Notes under the pieces: generated by a model
Database searches by the model: none
Told to the model about the DNA's origin: nothing
What the model saw: the letters and a program-made list of their open reading frames with translations, nothing else
Position numbers and translations under genes: made by a program
In this document: piece after piece, positions 41,480-61,465 of the stretch
Position numbering within the stretch: the first letter of the stretch is position 1
How the letters are laid out: each line of letters opens with the position of its first letter
NCBI GenBank assembly: GCA_964106645.2
Contig: OZ067040.1
DNA from: Podarcis pityusensis
Lineage: Eukaryota
Length of the DNA stretch: 64,000 nucleotides
Direction: 5' to 3' (one strand)

Positions 41480-41650
41480 GCTGAAAGGAAAAATTCCTTC
41501 TGACTGGATCAGAGTTTCATTGGATATACCTGTGTGAGTTACAGGTATAGCCCCACCCCCTGCTCTTGGCAGCCGTGACTGTGAGTAAATCAGATGAGTG
41601 GCTAATAGGAAACCTGAAACAGGGAGGAGAAAGGAAGAGTCTGTTTGGTT
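41480..41650 (+). promoter_or_regulatory. PRDM1: PRDM1 proximal promoter (TATA-less)
   Basis: Directly upstream of the exon 1 homolog; GCCCCACCCC Sp/KLF box at ~41550-41559; kB-like GGAAAAATTCC at 41487-41497. Confidence 0.6.
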
Positions 41651-41898
41651 AACACAGACTGAAAGTATCGTAACATTCAGCCCTCCAGTGTTTCAAAGAA
41701 GTTGAAGCAGTAAGTGCAGCAGCACCTGTCTGACAGTAAAGACAGAGCCAGAAGCAGAAGCAGAAGCAAAAGAAGCTAGCTCTATTGGTATTACTTGAAC
41801 CCGGCCAGTGGAAGAAGTAATGTTTACTCTGTAGATATGTGTGAGACTTACCTGAAACGTCGGGCTGCCAGCTGGAATTATTTGTGGACTGTACCTTG
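41651..41898 (+). other. PRDM1: PRDM1 exon 1 (5' UTR, contains uORF starts)
   Basis: AACACAGAC...GCCCTCCAGTGTT...GCACCTGTC and ...GTAGATATGTGTGAGACTT...GTGGACTGTACCTTG resemble the recalled human PRDM1 mRNA 5' end; donor TTG|GTAAGA at 41898/41899; TSS approximate. Confidence 0.8.
41820..41834 (+). other. uORF1 (MFTL*) in the PRDM1 leader
   Basis: ATG TTT ACT CTG TAG; first ATG downstream of the inferred TSS. Confidence 0.7.
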
Positions 41899-43484
41899 GT
41901 AAGAAATTTTCTTCCTACTCCTGTCCGGGAGTAGGGAGATGATTTTAGCACTCTTTTGAATGGAGACGGCAAACCTGTTAAGGTTCTCCTTGGAGACTTT
42001 CTCTTTAAGTTCGAGAGACCTTTGTTTTTATGATGATTAATTCTTTCACTGTTAGTGGCAACTGCCGGTTCACTGAGTTTCAGTATTAGTTCTCTTGTCA
42101 TAGCCTACAAAGTGGTAAAGGTATTGTTCAGATTGTACTAGGGTTTGATCTCATCAAGCCCACTGAAAGCACCGTATGAAGAACTATTAAATCTGCTCAA
42201 TGCTGTGAGGAAGTGTGGAATTAAGTTGATAACTTTGTTCTTCCAAACACTTCATCTTCTGAAAAACACTTCTTTGAGTTGGAAATATGACCCTGCTTTA
42301 CTCAGATACAAATGAAAATCTCTGGTAGGATTAGCAGTACAATGCTGGAGCCTAAAGCCTTTGTTTTGGAAAATGCTGTAGTTTAATCCAGTAACTTTAT
42401 ACCTGGGGAAACAAAATGATATGTTAACATTATCTTTTTAATGGGTAAGTAAAACTTAATTCTGTAAGTGTGTTCTTCAGATATTTAGTTTTTCCACAGA
42501 ATACTATTACTCCGCTTCTTTTAAAATATGTTCTTTTCTGAATGAGAGTAGAACACAAATAGTATGTGCTAACAATTATAGGAGCCCTAAAAAAAATATT
42601 TTCCTGATATTGTAGATGGGAAACTGAAGCAGAGGGGAGGCTTGCCTGTGGAAAGAGAGTACATGGCTGAGGTTTAAAACAGTGAGCCAATGCCATACAG
42701 CATATCTAATGCAGTTCAATCCCTGTATTGATGGTAGATTTTGCACTTTGTATTTAATTCTGTTGGAAGGCACAGAAAACAATACTACTGTATTTTTGTC
42801 TCTTTCTGATCCAAGTGGATATTTCTAGTTATTTCAGACTGGCTGTTTTCAGACTGATGTTGGTAGGATACAGTCTCCCTCAGCTGTCTGTGTGTCAGAG
42901 GATAAGAGGATGTCAATAGAGGGGAGGGGAGCGTTGTTTTTGAAAGTTGTTTGTGTGTTAGAAGCCGGTGGGAAAGTTCAGCCTTCCCCATTTGGAAAAG
43001 GCAAGCCTGTGTTCCGCTCGTCCAACGTGCACTTTCCATTTTTAGCCCATTCAGACGCAGACAGCAGTTCCTTCCTTTTCCTTTCCTTGTTTATGACACT
43101 TTTCCAAGGCAGCTTTTCCACAGGCTCTTTTGCACACAAAGCCTTGAATCTGCAGATTCATCCCCCCACCCCTACTGTTCAGATACTGAGGGAAGGTTCT
43201 AAAGAGGTGTGCACAGGTGCTGTTCTCAGACATGCTTTTCCTATTACTTTTTGTGACTTTGTTATTTTTACCAGCCCCAGCTCTTGAAAGCATTCCTTCA
43301 AAGAAGGCAGCTCAATTTATAGGGTATAGGGTATATGGTGTCAGTCCTCAGCTATCCCACTAATGCCATCTATTTGCCAATAGACAGCATTTAGGTCACA
43401 ATGCTAGAGGTGCTGAGAAAGGAATGGGAAGTAAATTTTCTTTTCTTTTCCAGGCTGCCACACTGTGTAGCTCGTATATTGTGA
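41837..43484 (+). other. spliced uORF2, 30 aa (MCETYLKRRAASWNYLWTVPWLPHCVARIL*); 41837-41898 joined to 43454-43484
   Basis: Open frame across TG|G at the exon 1/2 junction; TGA at 43482-43484, 36 nt before the main ATG. Confidence 0.7.
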
Positions 43485-43520
43485 ATCCCAGAGCAGCGAA
43501 GAAAAGGACCAGAGTTGATA

Positions 43521-43703
43521 ATGAAAATGGACATGAAGGATGCTGACATGACTCTATGGACAGAGGCTGAATTTGAAGACAAGTGTACCTACATTGTAAA
43601 TGATCACCCCACGGAGCCCAGCACAGAAGGCTGCAATGTAACCCAGGCTGAGTCTTCCTTGCCAAGGAACTTGATTTTCAAATATGCAGGACATGGCAAA
43701 GAG
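43521..43703 (+). CDS. PRDM1: PR domain zinc finger protein 1 (Blimp-1), exon 2 coding part (exon 43454-43703)
   Basis: [30 protein letters not shown]...[10 protein letters not shown]; acceptor TTTTCCAG|; donor GAG|GTAAGA; an in-frame upstream TGA fixes the start. Confidence 0.97.
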
Positions 43704-59315: not shown

Positions 59316-59796
59316 CCTCTTGTGTGTCTCATCCATAGTTCTGTTATTCATGCATGATTGCAAGGCACTCAGTCACCTTTTAAAGTGACGAGTGTTGAAA
59401 CTTGTTTGTTTTCGTTAGAAGCAGTTGAAGGAGCTGGAACAGCCAAATCCTTTTGCCTTGGAAAGGTATATAGTAAGCTGCCTTGTTATCTACAAAGTAT
59501 GCATCAGGTGCTACTGTGTTTTCTGTAATCAGTTTAATCCAATAATATACAAGAAAGGTGAGACTAGAACAAATGTAGCAGAAATGAACTGACTGGATCA
59601 TGATAATCACCCAGGATTTAATAAGTAGCTACTGAGTTTATTTCTGTTGAGTATAATGCTGTGCTATTCCTTCCACCAATGCAAATACCTAGGAATGACT
59701 ATTTATATGTGTGTTTTAAGGCAGAGGCTAATGACCAATGTCTGTAAATTGTCTTTATTGGCCTTAAAAATTCATTGCCTTGTTTTTATATTTCAG

Positions 59797-60842
59797 CACA
59801 AAGCCATGTTAATCCAAAGCAGCCAGCTAATGACAAAGATGAACTTTATCTAAAAACTGTTCCCAGAAGAGAGCACAGTGTGAGGGAAATCCTGAAAACT
59901 GATTCCAGTAATCCCAAAGGAAAGGAATTATTTTATAGCCACATTTATCCACATACTCAAGAAAAAGACTTGGAGGGCTTGAGAAAAAATTGTAGTCCTG
60001 AAAAGCCTTTCTATCCTCGTATTGTCTACCCAATCCGACCGCCCATCCCTGAAGATTACCTGAAGGCTTATAGGATTGAGAGGCCAAGTTACATTGCCCA
60101 CTCACCTATCCAGTCTTCTACCACACCAAGCCCCTCAGCAAGAAGTAGTCCAGACCAAAGTTTGAAAAGCTCAAGCCCTCACAGCAGCCCAGTTACAGTC
60201 TCACCCCTAGCTTCTATGACTCAAGAGCACAGAGAACCTTATCCTTACTTGAATGGACTCTATAACTCAGAAGGATTAGGGGCATATTCTGGGTATGCAC
60301 CTTCAAGCCATCTCCCGCAAGCCTTTCCCTACCACAAATTTTTGTTACCACCATATGGCATGAGCATCAACAATTTCAACCTCTTTCCAAGGATGTATCC
60401 TTTCTACAGCAGCCTACTCAGTGGAGGAAGCATCCCCAATCATATGCTGAACTCCTCTCCAGGACTTCCAAGTTCCTTGCCATCTGATGGAAGCCGACAG
60501 CTGCTGCAACCTGACCATCCAAGGGACTTCCTCATCCCTGCACATAACAGTGCCTTCTCTATCACAGGGGCAGCTGCCAGTATGAAAGACAAGCCATGTA
60601 GCCCAACTAGTGGATCGCCCACAGCGGGCACAGCAGCCACTTCAGAACACATAATGCAACCTAAACCTACCTCAGCAGTGTTGGCTGCCACCAGCAATGA
60701 AGAAGCCATGAATCTTATCAAGAACAAGCGAAACATGACTGGTTACAAAACCCTCCCATACCCACTGAAGAAACAGAATGGGAAAATAAAGTATGAATGC
60801 AATGTCTGCTCCAAAACCTTTGGTCAGCTCTCTAATTTGAAG
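59797..60842 (+). CDS. PRDM1: Blimp-1 exon 5 (Pro/Ser-rich region, start of ZF1)
   Basis: ...[26 protein letters not shown]...[34 protein letters not shown]; TTTCAG| and AAG|GTAGGC; 1046 nt, phase 1-0. Confidence 0.98.
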
Positions 60843-61465
60843 GTAGGCCTTTGAAGGAAAATATCATTTCTAGACCTCATGGATAAACAAACAAAACCCC
60901 AAACCAATCTGGTTACTGTCTCTCTGGAAAGTCTTTCTTAAGCACCTGTTTCTTCTAGGCTTTAATCACCTATGTTGGTTTTAGTATAGTATCTTGATAT
61001 TGTGGTAATAACTTTTGAGGTTTAATAAACCTTTGGGGTTTAATTACCTTTTGACATTTTCAAAGGATAACTCCCTGCAACAATTGAGCAAGTTGATTTT
61101 AGCATGTAGTGGACATAATCTTTTCATTCTCATTCCTTGTGGGGCTTTTGTTCTGATAACTGCTAAGTGAGAGCATCCATGGAATAGCCAGATTTAATTT
61201 GTGTTCTTCATTGGATCATCAATAAGTGCAAAATGGCCCTAGAAACTTGGAGAACAGTTCCAATGCTGCATTTTTAAAAAACATACTTTTTAGGGAGCCT
61301 TTTTTAAAGCCTATCCAAGTTAACTGTATATTGTGCAACTTTGGGCAAAAGTAATAAAAGCAACAGTGCCTGGTATTTTAGATACTCAATAAGTAGATTA
61401 GGATATTTAACACACTATCTTGGAAGCTATTACGAAAGTATAATAAATGTTCTGTTTCTTAAAAG

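Follow-up and report, generated by a model that had tools for sequence, protein, structure and literature searches.

A conserved pair of upstream open reading frames in the PRDM1 (Blimp-1) leader of amniotes that probably acts by position rather than through its encoded peptides

In the mRNAs of C/EBP-alpha and C/EBP-beta, an upstream open reading frame (uORF) directs which of the in-frame start codons (LAP*/LAP/LIP) is used. In the ATF4 mRNA, which has a uORF2 overlapping with the main ORF, tens of nucleotides separate uORF1 from uORF2, and ribosomes reinitiate at uORF2 as long as eIF2-alpha is not phosphorylated. More generally, 40S subunits often go back to scanning after uORFs of the size class of four codons. 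Blimp-1, the product of PRDM1, acts as a master regulator in plasma cells, in effector and resident T cells and in primordial germ cells, and it is dose-sensitive. To our knowledge, nearly all work on its control has dealt with transcription. The uORF of C/EBP-beta is the subject of one paper (PMC4552494), and DENR/MCTS1-dependent reinitiation after very short uORFs is mentioned for ATF4 in another (PMC12804389). For uORFs in the PRDM1/Blimp-1 leader we found no paper among those searched, and a full-text search with uORF terms gave unrelated matches only. The divergence of the amniotes dates back over 300 million years, and a leader module kept for that long would offer a handle on the translational control of Blimp-1.

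The window analysed here is a stretch of 64,000 nucleotides from Podarcis pityusensis (GenBank assembly GCA_964106645.2, contig OZ067040.1), and it carries the 5' end of PRDM1/Blimp-1 of this lacertid lizard. The identity of the gene is given by the exon ORF at 59775-60851, which matches Rhineura PRDM1 at 85%, and in tblastn Podarcis PRDM1 and the exons of the window were 95-99% identical. The coordinates of the leader are summarized in Table 1. uORF2 comprises 30 codons across intron 1, with the TGA as codon 31, and the G at position -3 of its ATG comes from the stop codon of uORF1. The predicted intron 1 has the donor TTG/GTAAGA at 41899 and the acceptor ...TTTTCCAG/G, with the next exon starting at 43454 (slashes indicate splice junctions here and below). 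The orthologous junction is used by annotated python and Podarcis models and by a salamander mRNA contig (L008). An earlier note on this DNA had described uORF1, the 2-nt gap and the spliced 30-codon uORF2, and all of this was confirmed in the sequence. It had also stated that uORF2 stops 36 nt before the main ATG and in the same frame, with only the TGA between them. This applies to the window and to Rhineura, but in the other six species of our set the distance is 35 nt and the two frames differ.

Table 1. Features of the PRDM1 leader in the window (positions are those of the whole window)
Feature	Position	Strand	Remarks
uORF1, ATG TTT ACT CTG TAG (MFTL, stop)	41820..41834	+	purine (G) at -3; stop TAG 41832-34
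2-nt spacer (AT), uORF1 stop to uORF2 AUG	41835..41836	+	sequence
uORF2 exon-1 part, 62 nt, MCETYLKRRAASWNYLWTVP plus first 2 nt (TG) of a Trp codon	41837..41898	+	
Extension-CDS remnant TSGCQLELFVDCTL, other frame than uORF2	41857..41898	+	tblastn of Liasis P0262 and Podarcis P0249 N-termini (41857/41863-41898)
Intron 1, GTAAGA ... TTTTCTTTTCCAG	41899..43453	+	predicted from donor and acceptor in the sequence
Intronic ATG, extension frame through the acceptor (MGSKFSFLFQ/AATL...)	43424..43453	+	sequence
uORF2 exon-2 part, last Trp base (G), LPHCVARIL, TGA 43482-84	43454..43484	+	sequence
Extension frame (frame B) in exon 2	43454..43546	+	one extra nt puts frame B out of frame with MKMDM
36-nt spacer, uORF2 stop to main AUG	43485..43520	+	sequence
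Main start cluster ATG AAA ATG GAC ATG (MKMDM)	43521..43535	+	A at -3

For comparison, we used genomic sequences of eight amniotes, which included five squamates (the window, Tiliqua, Sceloporus, Rhineura, Liasis), one bird (Taeniopygia), one monotreme (Tachyglossus) and one bat (Myotis daubentonii, L007) as placental representative; turtle, crocodilian and marsupial DNA was outside this sample. Exons were compared and translated one by one, the split Trp codon was taken as 2 + 1 nt, and one human protein among the matches (P0216) was excluded throughout. Here, we found that in all eight species both upstream ATGs and the stops of both uORFs (TGA in uORF2) are kept at the same positions, with 2 nt between the uORFs and 62 nt of uORF2 in exon 1. 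Thus, the amniote-wide two-uORF architecture, which the earlier note had proposed with the help of a human layout, is present in real sequences, and the start and stop retention that it had suggested checking holds for all four triplets in each of the eight amniotes, the bird included. At the 12 bases of these triplets not a single parsimony step was required (12/12). Background triplets of the same leader were invariant in 6 of 82 cases (7%), with a mean of 1.14 steps per site, and at this background rate the chance of four invariant triplets (f^4) is about 3e-5. As expected of an evolutionarily conserved uORF, starts and stops are therefore retained beyond background in the eight amniotes.

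All eight species have the same start (ATG), third codon (ACT) and stop (TAG) in uORF1, and codons 2 and 4 vary (MFTL, MCTV, MWTV); fixed start and stop codons with changing codons 2 and 4 are the pattern expected if the frame and not the peptide is selected. The spacer always measures 2 nt, and its second base varies (AT, AA, AG). The exon-1 part of uORF2 is 62 nt long and stop-free with an invariant ATG (8/8), the TGA is likewise invariant and always forms codon 31, and both upstream ATGs have a purine at -3 in every species (n=8). In Myotis, we found MWTV with its stop, the 2-nt gap and then MSDTDLRCWIFAWKNVWVRP-R-LPRSVTPAL with its stop, which essentially matches the human layout given in the earlier note. 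In seven of the eight species, at least the 220 nt before uORF1 are free of other ATGs, and in this otherwise ATG-free leader the two upstream ATGs stand out. The cassette was missing from one salamander mRNA.

The DNA of the exon-1 half of uORF2 has a second reading: in another frame, it is the ancestral N-terminal extension of PRDM1. This extension reads MPGCQLEVFVDCTL in python and MLDICLEKRVGTTL in mammals, both run on into AA(P/T)xCSS... in the next exon, and the mammalian annotated start is MLDICLEKRVGTTL/AAPKCSS. The uORF2 TGA corresponds to ..GTG A.. of a conserved Val codon in the extension frame. Since the exon-1 DNA is read in two frames, the resemblance of the lizard and mammalian peptides is partly tied to the second frame. 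Mammals and python have the long-isoform ATG at nt 21-23 of uORF2, and echidna and Myotis have a C at its position -3. This AUG is enclosed by uORF2 in Rhineura as well as in Myotis, echidna and python. It has been lost elsewhere: python, Rhineura and the mammals have an ATG where the window has ACG (41857), Sceloporus and Tiliqua also have ACG, and the finch has CCG. As the cassette is kept where the long-isoform ATG is lost, it is not a by-product of the extension CDS. The exon-2 leader measures 66 nt and is in frame in Sceloporus, Tiliqua, Liasis, finch, echidna and Myotis, and it measures 67 nt (+1 nt) in the window and Rhineura only. An assembly error behind this frameshift is unlikely because the 67-nt state is common to the window and Rhineura. 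With the ACG and the shifted frame, a single isoform is available in the window. We also considered that MLDxCLEK might come from a separate intronic 'exon 2', but the peptide maps to exon 1 in another frame.

When PRDM1 of mammals and python is compared with C/EBP, both mRNAs encode transcription factors and have a short uORF, out of frame, among alternative in-frame AUGs. In C/EBP, translation of the uORF decides on the downstream AUG; in PRDM1, where the next AUGs after that of the long isoform are those of the MKMDM cluster, the geometry would allow a similar choice. Unlike C/EBP, PRDM1 has two uORFs 2 nt apart, uORF2 is spliced across an intron, and the long-isoform AUG was lost in several sauropsids with the uORFs kept. 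With ATF4, ATF5 and GCN4 it has in common that a very short 5' uORF precedes a longer one in a stress- or differentiation-related transcription-factor mRNA. However, neither a uORF spacing of reinitiation length nor an overlap of uORF2 with the main ORF was found in the eight species. The uORFs are spaced by 2 nt throughout and 35-36 nt lie between the end of uORF2 and the main AUG, so that the eIF2-alpha logic of ATF4 does not transfer, and the 2-nt spacing makes an eIF2-alpha-sensitive switch of the ATF4 style, which the earlier note had raised, unlikely. The four codons of uORF1 are also reminiscent of the DENR/MCTS1 systems, and dependence on these factors is a candidate lead only.

Our preferred reading, with a probability of roughly 0.6, is that the cassette represents an ancient amniote uORF pair that acts by position rather than through the encoded peptides. 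Functionally, it would probably be an old translational brake or start-site selector. From the arrangement of the leader we infer that the uORFs are translated, and also the direction and size of their effects. Scanning ribosomes that initiate at uORF1, with its four codons and its purine at -3, would terminate 2 nt before the uORF2 AUG. Since initiator tRNA should not be reloaded within 2 nt, these ribosomes are proposed to skip uORF2 and, in mammals and python, would also pass the weak-context long-isoform AUG inside it. They could then resume initiation at the three AUGs of the MKMDM cluster, about 130 nt further downstream. Ribosomes leaking past uORF1 would initiate at uORF2 and read its 30 codons; between its stop and MKMDM lie 35-36 nt, which is proposed to leave little room for reinitiation. 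Thus, uORF2 would be the brake and uORF1 the bypass, and the pair would set the amount of Blimp-1. Where a lineage has kept the upstream ATG, the pair may also determine how much long (MLD...) protein is made relative to the short (MKMDM) form, because uORF2 encloses the long AUG and uORF1 ends 2 nt before uORF2, so that one split of ribosomes would determine dosage and ratio. This extended version, an amniote-specific start-site selector in which the uORF1/uORF2 choice sets Blimp-1 dosage and the long/short ratio, with pure dosage control in lineages without the long-isoform AUG such as lacertids and birds, is a tentative proposal that we consider possible but doubtful. A main start site downstream of an AP-1-like TGAGTCA, which is found at -43 from uORF1 in five species, and near uORF1 might leave some transcripts without uORF1.

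It is conceivable, but in our view unlikely, that the uORFs are incidental and that promoter-proximal or exonic DNA elements, the extension frame and splice signals account for the conservation, with the ATGs and stops as passengers. Promoter, exon 1 and proximal intron are 72-85% identical among squamates, so that conservation within squamates is not uORF-specific, and non-ORF sequence upstream of the cassette is invariant in this group. Conserved non-ORF motifs flank the cassette (TGAGTCA; CACCTG in 8/8; GAAAGT in 7/8, at comparable positions in 6). From the uORF1 ATG to the uORF2 ATG, 14 of 20 bases are invariant in the eight amniotes, which would allow for a DNA-level element there. The sharing of the uORF2 exon-1 DNA with the extension frame, the position of the TGA within the conserved Val codon and the lack of a coding signature in all three frames also fit the passenger explanation. 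However, the uORF1 and uORF2 ATGs lie upstream of the extension ATG, so the extension frame cannot explain them, and a purifying signal is absent from this frame (pN/pS 0.84). Those of its 4-fold-degenerate sites that contribute to the TGG codon and the TGA of uORF2 are invariant. Moreover, the cassette persists where the extension ATG or frame is lost or shifted, and uORF1 varies at internal codons and is fixed at start and stop.

A functional Trp-patterned micropeptide of 30 residues, which the earlier note had offered as an option, is highly improbable on the present data. The length of 30 codons is constant (8/8), W13 is invariant and W17 is present in 7/8. The pN/pS of the uORF2 frame (0.61) is the lowest of the three frames, but in this small test (8 species, 20 + 9 codons of uORF2) it is indistinguishable from the control frame (0.77; third frame 0.84) and far from codons 1-10 of the main ORF (0.15), and within squamates it amounts to 0.86. 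Substitution steps at codon positions 1/2/3 were 27/20/26, which means that there is no third-position excess. Neither pN/pS nor the codon-position steps in these 8 species and 20 + 9 codons thus identify uORF2 as a conserved-peptide uORF. The finch peptide (MSQVCRRRWASVWKRARTLP...) has few residues in common with the others, and the invariant TGGAA also serves Leu-Glu codons of the overlapping frame. The cassette is probably, as judged from the letters, a position-dependent, peptide-independent uORF pair and not a hidden peptide gene. Distinctly unlikely, too, is that the uORF2 AUG serves mainly as an alternative start for an extended Blimp-1, either via frame-shifting splicing or, in the window lizard, via TGA read-through. 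uORF2 shares its frame with MKMDM in the window and Rhineura, where the TGA alone separates the two, but this state is confined to these two Lacertoidea and arose through a 1-nt insertion; moreover, TGA A is not known as a read-through context. The N-terminus of mouse Blimp-1 isoform 1 (UniProt Q60636-1) is MREAYLRCWIFSWKNVWVRP-CQRL... and uses the uORF2 AUG and frame (UniProt table in PMC4009873), just as the earlier note had stated for MREAYLRCWIFSWKNVWVRP. Similarly, the models of Peromyscus (P0160), camel (P0181) and Hipposideros (P0131) start at the uORF2 AUG and run into MKMDM. These annotated starts indicate that the AUG lies within real mammalian transcripts. However, the fusions rely on differing, lineage-specific extra exons or acceptors, none was seen among the sauropsid models examined, and the uORF2 peptide carries no purifying signal. 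In mouse isoform 1 an extra exon shifts the frame into the main ORF, whereas the same AUG and frame give a closed 30-codon uORF when the exons are joined directly, as they are in the lizard, the python, the salamander and the majority of mammalian models.

If the reading as start-site selector is true, a translational layer would be added to the fate decisions of plasma cells, T cells and germ cells that are sensitive to the Blimp-1 dose. The cassette also bears on the annotation of the PRDM1 start, which in mammals is either MLD... (825 aa) or MKMDM (789 aa). For micropeptide calls in general, cross-species peptide resemblance on DNA read in two frames calls for caution when it comes without a coding signature.

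Two further candidate features of the cassette were rejected. A conserved RNA structure as reason for the conservation found no support (RNAalifold 0 pairs, no relevant match in Rfam), and a forkhead site TGTTTAC within uORF1 is restricted to sauropsids, the mammals having TGTGTAC and TGTGGAC. Bird X1 isoforms (MRIKGCFLFFQ/AATQ) and models from Varanus (P0285) and Logan (P0289) are annotated to start at the homologue of the intronic ATG at 43424, and this ATG is conserved in the DNA of echidna and Myotis.

We read and translated window positions 41600-43700, treating the exons one by one and taking the split codon as 2 + 1 bases. Every coordinate that an earlier note had proposed for two putative upstream open reading frames (uORF1 and uORF2) in the PRDM1 leader, their predicted splice and their stop was borne out. 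The large downstream exon is PRDM1 (85% identity to Rhineura), and the well-aligned exons share 95-99% identity with PRDM1 of Podarcis, Zootoca and Lacerta, which places the window in a lacertid lizard.

Features of the PRDM1 leader in the window (extension, ancestral N-terminal stretch upstream of the main start cluster MKMDM; slash, exon boundary)
Feature	Position	Strand	Basis
GAAAGT, conserved motif site upstream of uORF1	41661-41666		
CACCTG E-box, conserved motif site upstream of uORF1	41723-41728		
uORF1, MFTL-stop	41820 (ATG) to 41832-34 (TAG)	+	sequence reading and translation
Spacer AT, 2 nt	between uORF1 TAG and uORF2 ATG	+	sequence reading
uORF2 ATG, opens MCETYLKRRAASWNYLWTVP	41837	+	translation
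Extension, first half, TSGCQLELFVDCTL	41857-41898		tblastn
ACG replacing extension ATG	41857-41859		
Exon 1 end TTG/GTAAGA, TG of split codon left over	donor GT 41899	+	sequence reading
Intronic ATG, 30 nt inside intron	43424-43453		
Acceptor ...TTTTCTTTTCCAG/G, first G completes Trp codon	next exon from 43454	+	sequence reading
Extension frame, second half, at next-exon start	43454-43546		
uORF2 second-exon part, LPHCVARIL-stop	ends TGA 43482-84	+	translation
1-nt insertion	near 43498-43512		
Main start ATG, 36 bases past uORF2 TGA, same frame	43521	+	translation

For comparison we used PRDM1 loci with 10 kb of upstream flank from Tiliqua (L001), Sceloporus (L002), Rhineura (L003), the python Liasis (L004), zebra finch (L005), echidna (L006) and the bat Myotis daubentonii (L007), and together with the window this gave an eight-species set of five squamates, one bird, one monotreme and one bat. 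A pattern search for ATG-NNN-ACT-NNN-TAG-NN-ATG returned exactly one copy in each of these loci. The five squamates share the uORF1 peptide MFTL with the finch; echidna has MCTV and the bat MWTV. The changes are confined to codons 2 and 4, and start and stop are constant. The 2-nt spacer and the 62-nt length of uORF2 up to the GTAAG donor are also constant among the eight species, and uORF2 has 30 codons in all of them, with nine codons past the split codon and then TGA. The human uORF2 layout proposed in the earlier note is essentially matched by the bat (MSDTDLRCWIFAWKNVWVRP-R-LPRSVTPAL-stop). When steps were counted by Fitch parsimony on the eight-species tree, all 12 start and stop bases showed zero steps, and the background of the same leader had a mean of 1.14 steps per site and 6 of 82 triplets invariant. 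Both uORF starts carry a purine at -3 in all species. At least 220 nt upstream of uORF1 lack a further ATG in seven of the eight, and thus the two uORF starts are exceptions in a leader otherwise without ATG. In the python (L004 13952), an additional ATG (in cCATGAGTCAG) 44 nt upstream of uORF1 opens another uORF, which is not conserved elsewhere. It had further been claimed that uORF2 stops 36 nt before the main start, in the same frame and with the TGA alone between them. This applies to the window and Rhineura, but the other six species have a distance of 35 nt and place uORF2 in a different frame from the main ORF. The frame match is a lineage quirk, produced by one extra base before MKMDM that is common to the window and Rhineura.

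What is conserved here might be a peptide, and the earlier note had considered a Trp-patterned micropeptide. This reading is not supported by the substitution data, although eight species and 29 codons provide low power: parsimony steps at uORF2 codon positions 1, 2 and 3 (27/20/26) showed no periodicity, and pN/pS (Nei-Gojobori proportions, all species pairs) in exon 1 was 0.61 in the uORF2 frame (0.86 in squamates only), 0.84 in the extension frame and 0.77 in the third, control frame. The main ORF gave 0.15 over its first ten codons, and in no frame does the leader look like protein-coding sequence under purifying selection. Moreover, the invariant TGGAA and TGG blocks behind the Trp pattern double as Leu-Glu and Val-Asp codons in the other frame. 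RNAalifold found no consensus RNA structure in the leader, and Rfam gave no relevant match for it. Promoter-proximal DNA constraint is a live rival explanation of leader conservation, because the interval 43-270 nt ahead of uORF1 contains conserved motifs. The CACCTG E-box is present in all eight species and GAAAGT (an IRF/Blimp-like half-site, ACTGAAAGT) within 400 nt in seven, at comparable positions in six. Sceloporus, Rhineura, python, finch and echidna have a consensus AP-1 site, TGAGTCA, at precisely -43 relative to uORF1; the window lost it through a deletion of about 12 nt. Judged from the sequence comparison, the features under selection are most likely the positions of the two starts and two stops.

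The earlier note overlooked that the extension frame overlaps uORF2. Across about 200 PRDM1 orthologues compared at the N-terminus, the extension is encodable in most vertebrates: MLDICLEKRVGTTL/AAPKCSSSAVRFQGLAEGTEGT in placentals, MLDFCLEKLVDTTL/AATQCSS in a marsupial, MPGCQLEVFVDCTL/AAAQCSSYIVN in python and MPQMPDLCLDRLLDSTL/AATQCS in salamanders. In exon 1, the last two-thirds of uORF2 and the first half of the extension are one stretch of DNA in different frames, and therefore uORF2 encloses, out of frame, the ATG of the long isoform (MLD...). The uORF2 stop is formed by GTG-A at a Val codon of the extension. The enclosed ATG, which has C at -3 in echidna and bat, is the canonical mammalian start in UniProt and RefSeq-style models. 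In the window lizard the extension is disabled. Its ATG is replaced by ACG in the window, Sceloporus and Tiliqua and by CCG in the finch, and the 1-nt insertion, present in the window and Rhineura, shifts the extension frame off MKMDM. Rhineura retains the extension ATG, which gives a 45-codon uORF overlapping MKMDM. The Podarcis Ensembl model (P0249) has the extension in frame, and thus its state varies within Lacertoidea. In echidna (L006 11800) the first MKMDM codon is ACG (STKMGME), so that translation must begin either at MLD upstream or at the second ATG. From the intronic ATG, the extension frame stays open across the acceptor (MGSKFSFLFQ/AATLCSS...). The homologue of this ATG and its surroundings (ACAATGGGGATTAAAGG) are kept in finch, echidna and bat, and this homologue is the annotated start in bird X1 isoforms, Varanus (P0285) and Logan (P0289) models. 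The intronic ATG may mark an alternative start site or an isoform that retains the intron.

If selection acts on the start and stop positions, the gap of 2 nt between the four-codon uORF1 and the AUG of uORF2 would make translation of the two uORFs mutually exclusive. After uORF1, a ribosome would lack the time to regain initiator tRNA within 2 nt, would scan on over the AUG of uORF2 and that of the long isoform inside it, and would have about 130 nt to regain competence before the three AUGs of MKMDM. A ribosome leaking past uORF1 would initiate at uORF2 and mask the long-isoform AUG; termination 35-36 nt from MKMDM should then allow poor reinitiation there. Lineages that have lost the long isoform still keep the cassette, which argues for a core role in the dosage of the MKMDM protein. 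This proposal is closer to C/EBP, where uORF logic governs start-site choice and dosage, than to ATF4, which needs a long spacer between uORF1 and uORF2 and a uORF2 overlapping the main ORF. PRDM1 has neither: its spacer is 2 nt, and its uORF2 stops 35-36 nt short of MKMDM. The literature has carried the uORF2 AUG as the isoform 1 start ever since the first mouse cDNA, as tabulated in PMC4009873; our literature search found no paper handling the PRDM1 leader frames as uORFs or testing them. We rate the cassette as a conserved, probably regulatory pair of uORFs in the leader of a transcription-factor mRNA.

The two-uORF cassette was not found in a salamander PRDM1 mRNA contig (L008), which has the equivalent exon junction in a real transcript (...DSTL/AATQCS...). 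Here, a single 31-codon uORF (MPTAPRARINAS..., L008 178-273) runs in the third frame across both in-frame start ATGs to a TAG that the next exon supplies in ..GTG TAG C... The salamander has another solution at the equivalent place of the leader, and on present sampling the two-uORF module looks amniote-specific.
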